A DNA stretch of 64,000 nt from Guillardia theta CCMP2712 (GCF_000315625.1 NW_005434614.1:364404-428403); one strand, 5' to 3'. Numbered from the stretch's first letter, positions 1-8,735 are shown. The notes: a model not told the origin generated them from the sequence alone. Numbers and translations are program-made.

Positions 1-2158
1 ACTGCCCGAGCAGCTGGATACACCTCTGTACCAAGTTTCTCGTCGTGTATTTATGTCAAAAGTTTGCCTCCTTTACCGAATCCTCCCCCCCAGATTGTCT
101 ATCCGCTTCAGCAAACGTGTTCTGCAGACTGCGTCAGTTGTTGTGGAGAACTCAACTGCACAATACCGAACAACGCGACCTGTTGTAGAAGGGCGCATGC
201 TATCCGCGGAGCCAGTTTCCAGATGGACGTCAAGGCAATCACTCAGGACTACGTGCAGAGAGTTGATGTGAACTTCTCTTTTCCTGAGGCAGTGCTGCCT
301 GTGCCAACAACTATCCAGAAGAAATGGGGTTGTGGTGATGTCTCCTTCGATCAGTGTACCTCTAATCCTTCCATCTCCAACGATGTAATGACGAAAACCC
401 TTTTATTTGCAAGTTGCTCGGTTCTGATGCAGATACCGGTCAGGTTACAGTGAGATTCAGTTACGCACAAGGCCAGGACTCTATGACAGGAATTTACAAG
501 ATTTGCTATCAAGCTGTGCAGGTTTGTTTGTACCCCTTGGGTGCTAATTGTTAACACAGTACGGTCTAGGTTTCAGATCCGCTTGTGAACAATGAGCTCT
601 GGGCTAGATTCTATGGAGGAAGTTACACTCAGAACAGCTGCCTTGTCTGCATCGCGTTGAGGATAGAAAGCGAACCTTTCTTTGTTGAGACCACGCTCTT
701 GCAGCAAGGCTCGACGGACAACTCAGTAACAATCCCTCTAGCAGTAAGTCAGATCTTGCCCTCGAGAAACCCTTTAGGAAATCATTACAGGTTGGGCGGA
801 CACTTCGAATCAATCTCCTAGCTGCATACAACATGGGAGGCTCAACTGCTAGCTTAGACATCTTCCCATTATCCGAACCGGGTCTTCCAAGCGGAGGGGT
901 CCTGTCGGCAACCAAGGTGGTTCGTTTCTTCCATATTTCGTGTATAAATGGAGTTCACAGCAAGTCAACTTGACTGGATCTGCTGTTCCTACTGCGTTTC
1001 AGCGTTCTTTCGACTTCACCCCTCATGTACTGACCTTTGCCTGCTTTTTGGTGTTTTGATACTGTAACAGGTTGGGCAACAAGCTCAGACGTTCTCCGTG
1101 TGTTTTGCAGCCAAGAGAACCGACATTGCTCTACAGACTCCACTGAACAGATGTTATATCATACAAGTGTATGAGGCAACTGTGTTCTGGAAAGTAGAGA
1201 AGGTGCAATTCGCGCCTCAAAGATTTTCGAATGAAGTTTGATGAGCAGGTTGGAACCAGCAATGTGATTGAGCTCAGATACCTGCGAGATACTGTGACTG
1301 TCGGCTGTCCGGTATCATACTTTCTGTACGCCAAGAGTCAGTTCTACAACATAGAACTTGAGCCAGACTTCAACTCAACCTGCGACGGATGTGCTTTGAA
1401 CGAGACATACGTGGTGCCTTCCTGCTCGAGCGATCCGAGCCTAACTTGCTGCGGCAATGGCAAGTGCGATGGGTTCGAGACAGGCATCAGTTGCCCAGTA
1501 GACTGCAAGAATGACAACTTCGATCTCAAGCAGTTGGTCTTGGGAAATTCAGCGAACGAATACACGAGCTCAATCCAGTTCTCGTGGACTCCAAAGGCGG
1601 ATATGAGAGGGCGGAAAGTATACTCCTGTCTGAGGGCAAAGGACGCAGTGAGCGGAACAGGAGCAATTTTTCAGAAGCTCACTCCATCGATTGCTCCGTC
1701 TTTCTGCTTTGTTTTTGATGTGGAGAAATGCAGCTTCTGTCTGAGCGGAGGGGCGACGTTTGAGCGGATCACTCGCACATTTCTCTTCAATCACGACTGG
1801 CTGCTGTTGTACAACAACAACCCCAACATCCCAAATCCGGACTCAGTTCCAGCTGAGACACGGCTTGTCATCGGTCCCACCTACACCGTCAAGCGGGGAG
1901 ACACAGTGATGAGCATCGCAGGTGCGAGCGGCTGGAAGTGTTTGCGCCTTGTAACTCATTTGCACAGCGTGGGCGAAAACAACGGTGAAAGGCATTCTAG
2001 ACCACAACCCTGACATGGCAGATCCTAACTTCCTTCCCCCGGGCTCCACAGTGTGCCTGTCGGTTTGCAGTCAAGCGGCCTCATATCAATGGTAAGAGGG
2101 TGAAACGCAGTGAGATGTAGGGGTGGAACATCTCCGCAGGTGTAACTTTATTGTTTGA
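1..2158 (+). CDS. Cys-rich protein with two C-terminal LysM domains; multi-exon, 5' end lies upstream of the window
   Basis: ORF 1231-2013 has ...WLLLYNNNPNIPNPDSVPAETRLVIGP and YTVKRGDTVMSIA. After a short intron it continues AWAKTTVKGILDHNPDMADPNFLPPGSTVC, completing the second LysM. Also a CGNGKCDGFETGISCPVDC Cys motif. Confidence 0.8.
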
Positions 2159-2200
2159 GTTTGCGGCATGTACATAGAGAGAGAGCTGGTTCAAACGCTG

Positions 2201-5200
2201 CTAGTCCTCCTTCTCCTTCTCCTTCTCCTTGCCCTCCAGCACCTCAGCGAAAGCATCGAAGAGAGCTCCTACGGGTATGGAGTACAATCCAATCCCTGCC
2301 ACCACCAAGCAGCACGCCAGCACCTGTCCGAGGGGAGAAAAGTCAACCTGTCCCCACTCGCCGCTGAGGAAGATAGCTGTAAAGTAGAGCGAGGAAGGAA
2401 TGTTGTCAAACGCTCCACCTAAAGCTGGGTTTCCACGATCGAGGAGGTAGAAGCCATAGGCGGAACCGACCCAGATGATTAGAGCGAGGAAAGACGTTGC
2501 AATGAGAGTGTCCTTGGAGGCGCGGAAGACGTCGTCGATCAGCGTGAAAGCCTCAGTGTAGTGCTCCCATTGCAGCACCCTGAGCAAGCGGAGGAAGCGA
2601 GGAAGCGCAAAGTCATACGAAATGCCACAAGCTGCCCAGTACCACTCGAGGTAGAAGGGAAGGAAAGCGAACATGTCAGCTGTCCCAAAGAAGGAGGTCA
2701 AGTAGCCCATCCGTGAGAACCTGAGCATAAATCAGCCTCTCCTTTCAAAGGATCAGACTCACCCGGCCCTCCGATCATAAGGAGCAGCAATCACTCGCAG
2801 GACATACAAGACCGTAAAGAGCATCCCGCATACTCCCTCCAGCGAAGCGAAGAAGCCGTCACCGATCTGAACTCTCATCGCCTAATCGATTGCTCAGTGA
2901 CGCTCGATGATCAAAAACAGACGCACTGGATCAGACTCAAGGATGATCAAGACAACATCGAAGCCGATGAAATAAAGCATGAGGTTGTCGAACCAGACAC
3001 CTGTGTCATCGTCCGGGGACAGCATGATCTGAATCTTGGAGGCGAAGGAGCCGTCATTGAGGTAAACAGGATCTTCAGCCTGAGCAAACAAAATCAGGGT
3101 AGCTATAAGGATGTACGATAATTCAACGAGCCATGGGTGGAGAGGGCGCAAACGAGTAAGTGAGCTTGACAAGCTTAAAGAAGCAAGAGATAGCAAGGAG
3201 AAGAATGAAGAAGAGTGGAGAGCGATAAATGGGACCTTGGCTTCTCTATTCTCCTGAGATTTCATTCCTCTTCGTTTTCTCTGCTCTTTGTAAGCTGTAG
3301 GCTCGACAAGCATGAAGAGGATTACCTCTTTGAGAGCCACGTCTGTGAAGCCATTTGCAATGATTCCCGAGGGGATGCTTACGATTCCCACAGCAAACAA
3401 GCACATGAGGAAGCAAAGAAATTTCCCCGCGAGTGTGTAGTCGATAAGGGGATAGTCTCCAGAAAGATGTATCAACGTGTAGGACATGGCAGAAGGGACA
3501 TCCTTGTAGCGTTTTGCCTGCATGAAAGTCAGCAGGCAAAGTCAGAGGCTTGACGACCTCTCACCATTGTCACTCCATTTTCAGTGGGATCCAGCAAATT
3601 GTTCTTCTCCGTCATCCACATCAACGTGCTAAACATAAGCCAGAAAACTGTCGCCGCAAAGCCTGTAACAGCAAGAGGAAGCGAATTTTCACGAAAGACG
3701 TCGTCGATAAGCGTGATAGACGGGATGTACCTGCAGCAAAGACTAAGGAACTTATCGCACGCACACAAACACTCTCGTACTTGTCCATCTTCAGCAGTCG
3801 GAGCAGACGGAGCATTCGCAAGGCCTCGTCATATTTGTCCACAAGTCCTCCCGGAAACAGGAGCGACCAGTAGTATGGGGCAATGGTGAGAAAATCTGTA
3901 GAATTTCAGAGGGATATGCAGGAAAATGCATCAACCGATAATGGCATAGAAGGAAAAGATGAATCGCATTCTAGGAAACCTCTTGCTGGAAAACAATGGA
4001 TCTAGAGGTGCTGAAATAAGACGAAGGATGTATTCAATCGTGAAAATGCAGACGGAAATCTGATCATCAAAAGAAAACATCAAATATCAAATATTAAATG
4101 TCAAAAATGAACAATCAAGTTCAAACCAGCTCGATATGATCTAACAGATGTTTATGCTCCTTGCTGAAGTCTGGCAATGTTTCCATAGACTTTGAAGAAA
4201 TAAATGGTCACAAAACACCAAAGAGATCAGAAAAAGAGAGCAAAAAGATGCATACCTGTTGGAAGACAGTGGCGAAAATAAGGTAGAAGAGAATCTGTTC
4301 AAAAATGCTTCCTAGCAATGTTCTCCCTTCTACAAATTGCCGAATAGGGAAAAGAAAGCTTTCTTCTTGGCTATGAGACTCTTGCTGCTGGCTGGCATCC
4401 TCGTCTTTCTTAGAGTATCTCTCTGTCGCCCACTCTTCGAAGCCGTTTCCAAGTATGCCTATGGGGATGGCAAACGTTCCAACAGCCAGCACTCCCATCA
4501 CTCCAGATATGACTTTGCCAAGGGGCGAGTAATCGCAGAGCGGGACCTCACCACACAAATTGAGCAGCGTTGGCCACATGGCATCGGGGATAGAGGCATA
4601 GTAGTGCTTCCCGTCCGGCGCCACCAACTTGGGGTTGTTGCGCTCTAGCAGATACATGACAGAGGAGAAGAATATCCACAATACTGTTGCTGCAAAGCCG
4701 CTGACCGCCAACACATCTCGGTTGTTGAGAAGAATATCGTCGAAGATGGTGAAGACTTTCACATAAGATTCTAGCTTGAGCATCCGGAGGAGTCGGAGAG
4801 ATCTGACGAACGAGATGTTCACCTCGAAGGGCCAGAGGTCAAACGTTGAGAGAAAGAATGGAAGAATAGCTGAAAGATCCACGATAGAGTAGAACGTTCC
4901 AAAGTACTTGATTCGCCCAAAGAAGCCGCTGTAATCGGGACGAACACCGACAGCATAGAATCTCAAGAAATAGTCCAGAGTGAAGACAATCACTGACACG
5001 TCTTCAATTCTATCAAACCATTTCATCAAACTTTCATACCGATGCATGTATTGCATCGAGTCCATCACAAAACCAAGAACATTGCACAAGATTACCACGA
5101 TCATCGCCTTCTCATACATTCGCCCTGCATCGGTATAACCATAGAGAAATCTGAAAGCCTCAGATTGAATATCTCCGCACAACATTGGTTCAGAAACTAT

Positions 5201-7039
5201 TTCAGTTTCATCATTCTTTTCCTGCTTCTTTTTCTTAGCCGCATGCTCCTCAAAGCCGTTTCCAAATATGCCCGTAAAGATTCCAAAGACGGCGCATGCT
5301 ATTGCGGAGGTGAACACTGCAATCACTTTTCCTAATGCGGACCTGTCGTTGACCAGAGGGAACTCTCCGAATAAGTTACAAAGGGTGAAATACGAAGAGC
5401 TTATAGTAGATTTAGTAATCTGATGAGCAACAAAAGATTTTCACCTGGCGATGCTTGTGAAACGTCCATCCATCGCTGGATTGTTTCTTTCCGCCATCCA
5501 GTTTGCCCCTGACAAGATGATCCATACCTTTGAAGACTTTAAACAAAAGCAGAAAAACATTTGATTGCATGCTCACAGCTGATCCTACAAATCCTGATTT
5601 GAATATCAAGACCTTATTTTCGCGATAGATATCGTCAAAAACTGTGAACGCCTCCAGGTACCTTTCACCAAATCAATTTTTGGTGTCTTTCGTTTTGCAA
5701 ACAGAAATCAGAATTGAAAGGAGTTGGTGAGACCTTCCTTCTAGACGCATCACTCGGAAGAGACGAAAGATCCTCAGAAACTGAGATGCTGGCAAGTCGA
5801 TGTAAACCCCTTCGCCTTTGCAAGCAGCCTGATAACGAAGGTAACTGAGCGACTATCAGGATTGTACTCATACTCTTGTAATATACAGCGAGTAAAGCTG
5901 CAATTGAAGAATCAATGACTGTAACAGATACAAATGATCGTTAAAATTTAGAATCTTGCCTCGAAGTAGTAAGGAAGAATGCTTCCAAGGTCAACGAGGG
6001 AGTAGAAGGAGAAAGTCCAGCGCCTAGTGTTTGCATCAGCTCAGATACCATGGTGACCTTGTAATCTCACAATCGTGTCATGAAGACATCAGTTTTTCCA
6101 CTGCATTGAAACTTAAGACACAAAGAACAAAAGAATTTGTTCCTCCTTGCCTTTTCACATGAGTCATAAGGTGTTCAGGATCATCGGCGGAGCTCCACCA
6201 CCGCAACGCATATTCAACAGTGAAGAAGAAGACCTGTTTGTGGAGAGGTCAGCTCATGGATCGATCATACTATAGACTAGTGTTACTGACCGAAAAGGTT
6301 TCTAACGAATCAAAGAAATGATACACACTGGGTTCAAATCCTTCAACCTGCACGAAGGATCACATGTTTGCTTGCTTAAAGACCAATAACAAATATCATG
6401 TCGATCTTCTCGCATATTGGCTCAGCCATATAGTTTTTTTCATCATTGTTGAAGCTTTATCTGTGCTGCACTAGGACATAGCAAGAGATTTTTATTTTAC
6501 CGAGTCAAGTATGAAGCACACAACGTTCAGAGTGATCAGCAAAATCGAAGGTACGACCTGTTTCAGAAAAATCAACAAGCAGATGCACTTTGATGGACAT
6601 CAGCTCACAAAATATATTCCGTATTCATCTTTGGCATCCAGGAACTGATGAACACTGAAATATGCAGCATTAGAGCAATGAACATGAAAAATCATGACAA
6701 CGGGTCCACTAAGGTCTAAACCAGGGGTCTCAGAAATGATTTCGAGTGAATCGTTTGAGATCACGAAAAATCAAATGAACAAACTAAAAGAAACTGGTAA
6801 ACCAAAGAAATTGGTTCAGGATTGAAAAATCAATACCCACTGCACAAAGGTACGAATCCTTCACTGATGGGGCATAAGGGGCATAGCAATGGCAACACAC
6901 AATGTTGCTTCTTCTCATTCGTTTTAAATCTCCAGAAGTCGATAAGAAATCTTTGAACACGAACCAAAAAGTGGACAAGATACTTAAGGAGGAAATCAGA
7001 AAACAAGGAACAAGCTCACCGATGCCGAAAGGATGCCAT
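2201..7039 (-). CDS. Four-repeat (4x6TM) voltage-gated-like cation channel made of Kv/KCNQ-like units with non-GYG pore loops; multi-exon, start approximate
   Basis: Four S4 segments: FLRIFRLFRVMRLE, FVRSLRLLRMLKLE, ALRMLRLLRLLKMD, PRFLRLLRVLQWE. Four pore loops: TLCNLFGEFP, TLLNLCGEVP, TLIHLSGDYP, TAIFLSGEWG. Four S6 segments: IFTGIFGNGF, IPIGILGNGF, IPSGIIANGF, IPVGALFDAF. The repeat-I S2 exon VFFFTVEYALRWWS lies at ~6160-6233. Confidence 0.85.
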
Positions 7040-7165
7040 GACGTTCTGACAGAGGTCGTAAAAATCATTAGTCAACCATTTACCATTGGTAGTAGCAGTC
7101 GGTCAGAAGAGCAGTAATAGTACAGTAGTTAGACAATGATATTACGCAACAGATGAGGCATATCC

Positions 7166-7193
7166 AGGGTTTAGAGGGTTTAGGGTTTAGGGT
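7166..7193 (+). repeat. Short interstitial telomeric tract (TTTAGGG-type)
   Basis: agggtttagagggtttagggtttagggt directly abutting an LTR. Confidence 0.85.
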
Positions 7194-8735
7194 TAATCGA
7201 ATCAACCTCCACCTCACTGGCCAGAATCTATTTAACCCAAGATCCACCAAAGACTAAACCAACACTTCCTTTATTCACAGCAGTCACCTTCCCTTCAGTC
7301 CCTTGCAACCAAGTACAATGCACAGCGCGCAGTGGACACGTGTCCTCCTAACCCCCTCTTCTCCGCCTGACCCTCAGGCTCGTCGATTCCTTAATTCCAG
7401 ACCTATGTCGAAACCCACTTCCATCTCGCTGAGCTTCGTCCACCAATGAGACGCAATACCCTGAACTTCTCGCCGTCTCCAAGAACTTATCCGAGTTCTT
7501 ACACCCTCCCTGACGAAGTTAAGCGAGATTCTCAGCTCACCCTTTTCCAACATCATCTCCAAGCTGTTGCCCCCTTCCCTGGTCCTCCTTGCATCCTTGA
7601 TCACCCCCTTCCAGCTCCATGCTCCTTCCTTCATCCTCATCTCATCCTCCGACCTGAAAATCCCTTCCAGCATCCTTCCAGCATCCCCATCTCATCCTCC
7701 AACCTGCATGCTCCCAGGCTGCATCCCAATCACCTCCTCCAAGCTCCAAGCTGCTTCCTGCACCCAGCTTCTCCTCCAAGCTCCAACCTGCTTCCTGCAC
7801 CTAGCTCCTCCTCCAAGCTTCAACCTGCTTCCTGCACCCAGCTCCTCCGCCAAGCTCCAATCTGCTTCCTGCACCCAGCTCCTCCGCCAAGCTCCAACCT
7901 TCTTCCTGCACCTAGCTTCTCCCCCAAGCTCCCACCTGCTTCCTTCACCTCGCTCCATCCCTCTTTTACCTACACATCCTCCTTCATAGAAACCTCATCA
8001 GTAACATCAACACTCCTCCACCACCTGAACTTGAATGTGCGCACTGCACTTGTTCATCAGGCTCCCCCTCTGATCAGTCAGACTCCCCTGACACCTTTCT
8101 GATCATCCTGTCATCCTCCCCATCATTGTATTTCAAATCCCACTGTTTTCAATTGTCATCCATCTGACTTTCTCCATCCAAATTTTTCAACCCAATGATG
8201 TCCATCAATCATGACCAATGTTTTGTCCTAACTAACCTGCTCTACGGGCCCATCTAAAATCTCTATCTAACCGCGGTATGAAAGATCGATTTGGCGCCAT
8301 TTTCACCTGAGAGCTCTTGATAAAAATCATTTGCATGCATTGTTCTTTTCGACCTCATGATCTTTCATTTGCCTTTCCCATCAATCATTTCTTTTGAATC
8401 ATTTTTCGATTTCTCAATTTCTCAATTTCTCAACGGCCGATTAAATTTCGATTTCATTTCTGACGATCATGGGTCTTGTATTTGATCATGATGGAGGCGT
8501 CACCTAACCTGTTTGACTGAACCCAGAGTTTCCTTGAACAGTCTTCGGGAGAGCAAGCTTCATACCACGCCCAGCCAATCATCTGATTCTACTTCTCCAT
8601 AGCAAACCTTCCTTCCAAGGTTCTCCCTCCCTGAATCAGAGATTGGTGTAGGCGTTTGCTCAATGGCACAAGCTGTACGAAGAACCTCATTGTGTACAAG
8701 CTGGGATAAATCCCACTGAAGTTCCAAGTTGCTCC
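7194..8735 (-). mobile_element. 3' fragment of a Ty1/copia relative: 310 bp LTR (7194-7503), PPT and long 3' UTR
   Basis: Starts taatcgaatcaa, compared with tattggaatcaa at 18243. Shares gagttcttacaccctccct (LTR end + PPT) with 18722-18740, and ccctccctgaatc (~8625) with ~19940 and ~20017. Confidence 0.75.
7740..7955. repeat. Tandem repeat, ~37 bp x ~6, in the retroelement 3' UTR
   Basis: Unit caagctccaacctgcttcctgcacccagctcctccgc with variants. Confidence 0.9.

Follow-up and report, generated by a model that had tools for sequence, protein, structure and literature searches.

The window considered here is a 64,000-nucleotide stretch of the Guillardia theta CCMP2712 genome (GCF_000315625.1 NW_005434614.1:364404-428403). 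At positions 2201-7039 its minus strand carries a gene for an ion channel of four repeats, each with six transmembrane segments (6TM), or 24 transmembrane segments (24-TM) in one chain. We confirmed that this interval is one expressed, spliced gene. Each repeat has a charged S4 segment, and the K+ channel filter signature GYG is replaced in all four by a shorter filter with an acidic residue (E, E, D, and E, in that order). The protein is one of an ancient family, spread widely among protists and as yet without a name, and phylogenetic analysis of the single repeats supports an origin of its 24-TM architecture independent of the voltage-gated Ca2+ and Na+ channels (Cav/Nav). A preliminary description, made from the sequence alone, had read the interval as a four-repeat channel built from Kv/KCNQ-like units that converged on a Cav-like acidic ring; most of it held, and parts of it had to be loosened, as set out below.

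How firm is the gene model? Three studies supplied RNA-derived contig sets (X5, X6, and X9), which were mapped onto positions 2000-7400 of the window. In each of them, one spliced contig runs from 7223 to below 2000, with the introns removed and all four repeats covered, so that the repeats lie on one transcript rather than on separate ones. The start codon (ATG, 7039-7037) and the stop codon (2203-2201), both on the minus strand, fall at the exact ends of the interval first noted. Fifteen exon joints are identical in the three sets, and six further joints are present but unlisted. The introns at the listed joints are all GT..AG on the minus strand except for one GC..AG and measure 40-156 nt, after the stated shifts of the cut positions. 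Followed through the joined exons from S3 of repeat I onward, the frame stays open without interruption as far as the stop codon, and the whole joined open reading frame (ORF) encodes 1094 amino acids.

Exons 2-6, which encode S1-S3 of repeat I, lie outside the listed joints. They were reconstructed from depth bins, the total length of the complementary DNA (273 nt were missing from the contig coordinates), splice signals, and the open frame. Only one exon chain for 6654-6071 accounts exactly for the depth bins (42/124/28/79/0) and for the 273 nt, with GT..AG at its introns and no break in the frame; aligned with homologues, its product runs colinear with their repeat I (36% identity, E 1e-18). 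The resulting model of 21 exons has 20 introns, which leaves one of the six unlisted joints over. We used the joined 1094-residue product for local translation, profile hidden Markov models (HMMs), alignments, and trees, while database, fold, and genome searches took single exons. The gene model is as follows.

2201-7039, minus strand: complete coding sequence of the four-repeat channel, 21 exons, 3285 nt, 1094 amino acids (from spliced RNA contigs, splice sites, and the continuous ORF)
7020-7223, minus strand: exon 1, the 5' untranslated region (UTR) and the first 20 coding bases; the X6 and X9 contigs both end at 7223
6654-6609, 6557-6501, 6347-6291, 6233-6151, 6100-6071, minus strand: exons 2-6 (S1-S3 of repeat I), reconstructed outside the listed joints
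6023-5960, 5897-5874, 5828-5734, 5661-5577, 5527-5445, minus strand: exons 7-11, joints identical in X5, X6, and X9
5399-4256, 4189-4127, 4059-3936, 3895-3781, 3730-3565, minus strand: exons 12-16, joints likewise identical
3517-3326, 3280-3236, 3079-2927, 2881-2763, and 2720 into the 3' UTR (below 2000), minus strand: exons 17-21, joints likewise identical

What are the four repeats made of? All are complete 6TM units in one orientation, each with its own S4, as the 1094-residue ORF and the HMM domain envelopes bear out. Repeat II scores 77 bits against the Pfam family Ion_trans (PF00520; cut-off 25) and repeat IV 46.9 bits, which places the protein in that superfamily; a Pfam search of the exon pieces returned nothing beyond Ion_trans, with neither a CNBD nor any other ligand-binding domain. 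The termini and the linkers between repeats are very short, and the chain ends nine residues past the repeat IV envelope (residue 1085 of 1094). Three to five arginines or lysines, spaced at every third position, line the S4 of each repeat. The main elements are listed by repeat.

5234-7039, minus strand: repeat I, residues 1-270 (HMM domain envelope)
4421-5179, minus strand: repeat II, residues 289-541, entirely within exon 12 (Ion_trans, 1.7e-21)
3329-4366, minus strand: repeat III, residues 560-815 (HMM domain envelope)
2231-3055, minus strand: repeat IV, residues 840-1085 (Ion_trans, 2.5e-12)
5357-5374, minus strand: pore motif I, LFGEFP, with E227 at 5365-5363
4541-4558, minus strand: pore motif II, LCGEVP, with E499 at 4549-4547
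3449-3466, minus strand: pore motif III, LSGDYP, with D773 at 3457-3455
2351-2368, minus strand: pore motif IV, LSGEWG, with E1043 at 2359-2357
5661-5777, minus strand: S4 of repeat I, LRIFRLFRVMRLEGR, split by an intron
4766-4807, minus strand: S4 of repeat II, VRSLRLLRMLKLES
3730-3821, minus strand: S4 of repeat III, LRMLRLLRLLKMDK, split by an intron
2564-2602, minus strand: S4 of repeat IV, PRFLRLLRVLQWE
S6 motifs: repeat I, FGIFTGIFGNGF; repeat II, IPIGILGNGF; repeat III, IPSGIIANGF; repeat IV, IPVGALFDAF

The four filter motifs read exactly as first described, and the GYG signature (T-x-G-[YF]-G) occurs neither in any of the four repeats nor elsewhere in the protein. In each repeat, the acidic residue follows directly on the filter glycine, with no Y-G (G-E/G-E/G-D/G-E). 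HMMER and MAFFT alignments agree that the pore loop (P-loop) is two residues shorter than that of GYG channels, and when the alignment is anchored on a conserved post-filter segment (P..[ST]..GK), the acidic residue lines up with the GYG tyrosine. A fold model of repeat II (AF2, from 25 aligned repeat II sequences; pLDDT 87.4) contains S1-S4, an S4-S5 linker helix, S5, a pore helix (201-213), and S6. The S6 motif IPxGILGNGF, at first likened to KCNQ and prokaryotic Kv channels, occurs unaltered in repeat II and in variant form in the other three; the bacterial part of that likeness stands, but the motif is not specific to KCNQ, as it is common to bacterial 6TM K+ channels.

Where else does this architecture occur? 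A HMMER search with exon 12 returned 4105 matches, 152 of them (clusters) below 1e-30, and many of the matched proteins are 1000-1500 residues long with four matched stretches. These 152 clusters, together with the two Ion_trans scores, place the four-repeat finding far beyond chance. The closest database protein, with 91% identity over repeat II, comes from another cryptophyte, Hanusia phi. Named members also come from the apusomonad Thecamonas trahens (XP_013759166, annotated "ion transporter") and from Mesostigma viride, and further ones from Symbiodinium (automatically named "Shal"), Polarella glacialis, Perkinsus chesapeaki, and chrysophytes. Look-alike clusters in the ESM Atlas are mostly labeled diatom (313 members), with haptophytes also represented, and carry generic names. 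Started from a full-length family member, a homologue search recovered 27 proteins, all of the family and none of them a Cav, within the limited reach of a word-index search.

The order I-II-III-IV recurs in 62 full-length proteins, and across them the acidic ring is close to invariant. The ring residue is E in repeat I of 60 of the 62 members, E in repeat II of 61, and D in repeat III of 61, where none has E; in repeat IV it is E in 56 of the 57 that could be aligned. The pore-helix tryptophan of repeat II is present in every member (62/62) and the tryptophan of the repeat IV pore motif in every aligned member (57/57), and the flanking glycine and proline are as conserved as the ring acids. 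S4 arginines are kept in all four repeats across the family, with some variation in the charges of repeat II. One relative, P0174 (808 residues, from eukprot), carries Pfam EF-hand domains, hinting that some members may be regulated by Ca2+.

Both simpler and parallel forms can be found around the family. Three stand-alone single-domain relatives of about 300 residues—P0135, P0133, and P0149—have an LTGE[YF]P pore and form one clade within the family clade in a quick tree, indicating that the acidic filter is not bound to the fused state. P0135 is a complete gene of 307 codons (L046:4001-4924) set between ordinary eukaryotic genes in the assembly GCA_008690995.1 of the National Center for Biotechnology Information, and P0133 lies at L047:4001-4930. 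All three would presumably form homotetramers with an E/E/E/E ring. Two metagenomic four-repeat proteins, P0046 (1493 residues) and P0081 (1748 residues), have GYG(D) filters instead, in all four repeats of the former and in at least three of the latter. Their repeats group within each protein, which marks them as separate further fourfold concatenations of K+ channel units; these look like more recent events, independent of the one that gave rise to the family.

How closely are these repeats related to K+ channels? The proposal of Kv/KCNQ-like units was borne out by sequence, profile, and fold comparisons of the repeats. With exon 12 as a phmmer query against the PDB, the best match was KCNQ1 (1e-17), followed by KCNQ2-5 and Kv1/2/4; the best 60 of the 65 matches below 0.01 were all K+ channels, with no Cav/Nav among them. 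The pore domain alone gave 60 PDB matches at E<=1, again all K+ channels and MlotiK1 included. No TPC appeared in either PDB search. Foldseek, run with the repeat II model, returned KCNQ1/2/4/5, Kv4.2, Kv1.x, or Shaker for all of its top 50. An HMM built from the four repeats gave 107-160 bits with bacterial 6TM K+ channels and 52-150 bits with multirepeat proteins that bear GYG. Searched at E<1e-3 against animal Cav, Nav, Cch1, and the four-domain channels of Guillardia, it found nothing except one voltage-sensor match of 17.9 bits. The reciprocal HMM, from a Guillardia four-domain channel, scored Cav/Nav at 50-140 bits per repeat and did not recover the present channel. The nearest relatives of the family include proteins of two or four repeats that have kept GYG; the two-repeat ones with TVGYG-type filters (P0103, P0134, and P0137) fall outside the family clade, and a homologue search from a two-repeat GYG protein returned bacterial K+ channels and no animal KCNQ, CNG, or HCN.

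A careful maximum-likelihood tree of single repeats (96 repeats, 245 columns, LG+C20) separates the family cleanly from Cav/Nav. The 40 family repeats all fall together in a single clade (100/99), as do all 24 repeats of Cav, Nav, and the Guillardia four-domain channels in another (100/100). The family joins bacterial-type K+ channels and some GYG tandem proteins in a clade with support of 100/99. Within the family, repeats I-IV each group largely across taxa (IV, 100/99; III, 96/90), and repeats III and IV are sisters (96/89), which is not the I+III/II+IV pattern. An approximately unbiased (AU) test rejects a clade of family repeat IV with Cav/Nav repeat IV (log-likelihood difference 208, P = 7e-8). 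The separate clades and this rejection indicate that the 24-TM layout arose once, in the ancestor of the family, independently of Cav/Nav. An independent origin had been put forward in the preliminary description, and the tree upholds it for the Cav/Nav comparison, for which the family repeats do not fall inside the Cav/Nav clade (TPC was not part of the tree). The further wording of that description, "from a K-channel lineage," stands only in part: the repeats side with the K+ channels, but the AU test does not decide between a place within them and a place as their sister.

Modeling of the whole protein gives a complementary picture. A model of the full-length Thecamonas homologue (47 aligned family members; pLDDT 84.1, pTM 0.85) superposes on Cav2.1, Cav2.2, Cav3.3, Nav1.7, NavPaS, and NALCN over ~1300 columns, with a TM score of ~0.6 and 12-14% identity. 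As modeled, the channel is built like Cav/Nav from Kv-like parts.

How does the family compare with known systems? With Kv7 (KCNQ), other Kv, and bacterial 6TM K+ channels such as MlotiK1, it shares the 6TM unit, the charged S4, the long S4-S5 linker, the pore-helix tryptophan, the post-filter P..[ST]..GK segment, and the S6 motif P-x-G-[IL]-[LI]-[GA]-x-G-F, and the bacterial type is its sister in the tree (100/99). Those channels are homotetramers, whereas here four units lie in one chain, GYG is missing, the P-loop is short, and an acid follows the filter glycine; the present protein also has no T1 domain, calmodulin-binding helices, coiled-coil KCNQ C terminus, or CNBD. With Cav, Nav, NALCN, and Cch1 it shares the single-chain 24-TM pseudotetramer and the asymmetric acidic pore ring, but it lacks the T-x-[ED]-x-W motif and long extracellular loops, its linkers are very short, its repeats are not orthologous to those of Cav/Nav, and the profile likeness to Cav/Nav is limited to weak voltage-sensor matches. 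CNG channels (filter TIGE, PMC7576140) likewise have a K+ channel-type pore that has lost Y-G and gained an acid after the filter glycine; the present channel differs from them in having no CNBD, a long S4-S5 linker of the domain-swapped type, and a ring of E/E/D/E from nonidentical repeats instead of four identical residues. Tandem Kv-like channels (PMC7576140) and CNGK show the same internal multiplication of K+ channel-type 6TM units in one chain, but with TVGYG-type filters and, in CNGK, with CNBDs and a I+III/II+IV pattern, in contrast to the short acidic filter and separate clade found here. EukCat channels (PMC6509283) are also protist voltage-gated cation channels, are present in cryptophytes too, and have been proposed as alternatives to four-domain Cav; they are single-domain and BacNav-like, whereas the present family is K+ channel-like and four-repeat. 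TPCs, finally, have two 6TM repeats per chain, dimerize, and are kin of Cav/Nav, as against four repeats here.

A literature search found no description of the family, functional or otherwise, although such a failure is not proof that none exists. A 2018 survey of four-domain channels (PMC5824947) listed ten Guillardia proteins; its S4 table has no S4 strings of the present gene and yields one partial match, to the repeat IV S4 of an animal Cav1. That match consists of RLFRVMRL, from the S4 of repeat I (5661-5777), which is also part of the repeat IV S4 of an animal L-type Cav (PMC5824947); we take it to be a coincidence of low-complexity S4 segments. A 2020 survey (PMC7576140) named CNG (TIGE) as the only clade departing from TVGY/FG and included no Guillardia sequence. 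The Thecamonas protein XP_013759166 is in neither dataset, some Thecamonas entries of 2018 being given by locus tag only. A 2024 survey of diatom Ca2+ channels and a 2025 chanome preprint describe known families only. We regard this group as a new variant, at the level of a family, among the voltage-gated channels, with a function that is so far predicted.

What might such a channel do? With moderate confidence, we favor a pseudotetramer of K+-type units that would be gated by depolarization and act as a non-K+-selective cation channel, probably passing Ca2+. One 6TM unit of K+ channel type (bacterial 6TM K+ channel- or Kv7-like) would have been multiplied four times in the ancestor of the family. 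The charged S4s, the long S4-S5 linker, and the S6 P-x-G motif would provide voltage gating of a domain-swapped, Kv-like kind. Replacement of TxGYG by [L]-x-G-[E/D]-x-P in a P-loop two residues shorter would remove the stacked K+ sites, and the acidic residues, about three positions past the pore helix, would together form an asymmetric E/E/D/E ring. This ring would abolish K+ selectivity and create a site for divalent cations, as a functional analogue of the Cav EEEE locus with a short G-E filter of the CNG (TIGE) kind, and the single chain would allow the asymmetry to be fixed, as in the EEEE/EEDD loci of Cav. The bacterial NaK channel, too, has a K+ channel-type pore without Y-G and with an acidic residue after the filter glycine, and is nonselective; the filter glutamate of CNG and NaK binds divalent cations in a pore that is itself nonselective. 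Taken separately, the loss of K+ selectivity seems likely from these motifs, while on permeability to Ca2+ we are evenly divided.

Several observations weigh against this reading. Few traces of the gene appear in the raw-read RNA run X24, which has almost no coverage of it (short reads, 3'-biased, ~6% of the run sampled); a few X24 reads at 2181-2542, on the same strand as the neighboring minus-strand polyadenylated RNA, give weak support. The tree holds no KCNQ, CNG, HCN, TPC, BacNav, CatSper, or EukCat sequences, the placement of which comes from the PDB searches. An AU test with the family and Cav/Nav on one side, in effect a test of whether the sampled K+ channels are monophyletic, gives no rejection (P = 0.12), so that we do not claim nesting inside the K+ channels, and a nested and a sister position both stand. 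No CNG or HCN appeared among the pore-only PDB matches at E<=1, which reduces the likeness to CNG to the level of a motif. Finally, ion selectivity cannot be read from sequence, a point also made for Kv versus HCN (PMC7576140).

Among the alternatives, the most serious, though unlikely, is that the protein does not serve voltage-gated Ca2+ entry at the plasma membrane at all, being instead an organellar, lipid- or ligand-gated channel with vestigial S4s, a pathway for protons or other ions, or a nonconducting voltage sensor. Repeat IV has an S4 with no more than three charges, and the S4 charges of repeat II vary in the family. Charged S4s are in any case no guarantee of voltage gating, as TPCs illustrate. 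Against these readings, S4 arginines are conserved in all four repeats; the strong constraint on the pore helix, the filter glycine, the acidic ring, and the S6 gate motif argues for a conducting pore, and ligand gating finds no counterpart among the domains detected (Pfam Ion_trans only).

That the channel is still K+-selective or K+-preferring, with voltage gating and an unconventional filter, we consider very unlikely. Its nearest relatives in sequence and fold are all K+ channels, and it has kept the first glycine of the filter as well as the P..[ST]..GK segment behind it. But the Y-G of GYG is gone from all four repeats, the P-loop is shorter by two residues, and a near-invariant acidic ring serves no purpose in selecting K+. 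Where the contiguous carbonyl sites are lost, as in CNG and NaK, so is that selectivity.

Still less plausible is that the protein has diverged far within the Cav/Nav/NALCN/TPC lineage, with its four repeats inherited from the shared four-repeat ancestor and its likeness to Kv due to convergence or a long-branch artefact. The global architecture is the same, the best structural matches of the Thecamonas homologue are Cav2, Cav3, Nav, and NALCN, the ring recalls the EEEE/EEDD loci, and a stretch of the S4 in repeat I is identical to one in the repeat IV S4 of a Cav1. However, a global match is expected of any single-chain 24-TM pseudotetramer and here comes with 12-14% sequence identity, profile searches fail in both directions, the duplication pattern differs (III and IV as sisters), and the tree resolves two fully supported clades with orthology of repeat IV rejected (P = 7e-8). 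An annotation artefact that joined two or more adjacent genes or transcripts is scarcely credible: exons 2-6 lie outside the listed joints, and a contig spanning two genes does not by itself establish one transcript, but single contigs with exact intron removal cover all repeats in three studies, every junction keeps the frame open, the short linkers between repeats lie within exons (exon 12 runs from the last part of repeat I through the whole of repeat II into the first part of repeat III), and 62 homologues have the same repeat order.

Why would a voltage-gated, non-K+-selective channel of this origin matter? A 24-TM pseudotetramer whose selectivity ring is acidic is what marks out Cav/Nav and is usually taken as a single invention; the same design was apparently reached a second time, from K+ channel-type units, across distant protist groups, in a family overlooked by both broad surveys checked. 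The family offers a natural experiment on how a K+ filter becomes a divalent or nonselective one and on why the E/E/D/E asymmetry persists, with D in repeat III and never E. The channel is also a candidate Ca2+ entry pathway for algal and protist excitability, of relevance where four-domain Cav is reported missing; if this were true and the family present in such lineages, it could be the alternative pathway raised for pennate diatoms (PMC11085791). Its compactness (~1100 residues with minimal loops) makes it attractive for expression and cryogenic electron microscopy. A fuller history is conceivable, which we offer tentatively as possible rather than probable: a bacterial-type 6TM K+ channel would have given rise to a single-domain acidic-filter form, of which the LTGE[YF]P proteins P0135, P0133, and P0149 would be extant examples, and the fused descendants would have converged on a Cav-like single-chain asymmetric acidic ring that supplies depolarization-activated Ca2+ entry in many protists.

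The channel gene is single-copy in Guillardia theta (87.1 Mb, 669 contigs searched). Its sole other match in the genome, a weak one, is a single-domain GYG channel of 22% identity, an intron-free gene of 537 codons (L042:855-2465; G000:C54, minus strand) with a TTVGYGD filter, which the tree places outside the clade of the family and the bacterial-type channels. The genome has at least 147 Ion_trans matches, several of them four-domain channels of Cav/Nav type. These channels (for example L036:921-6323, L037:651-6530, and L041:469-5196) are single intron-free frames of 1500-1960 residues, versus the 21 exons of the present gene.

Directly upstream of the channel gene, 7249-7400 (minus strand) has extreme RNA depth (~1000x in raw reads and tens of thousands in the X5 contigs), a poly(A) addition site near 7258, and an alternative letter in ~20-50% of reads at 7311, 7318, 7331, and 7334. 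These features point to the 3' end of a gene whose expression is very high and which is possibly multicopy or allelic. Beyond it, 7446-8102 is repetitive, of low complexity, and C-skewed on the plus strand (GC skew -0.64), where its frames give Pro/Ser/Leu-rich repeats; it may belong to the same highly expressed minus-strand neighbor. On the other side, a plus-strand ORF of 260 codons with no Pfam match (1231-2013) is convergent with the channel gene, and the X6 transcript contig extends ~300 nt below 2000. Probably the 3' ends of the channel gene and of this ORF overlap, or else the contigs fuse two genes there.

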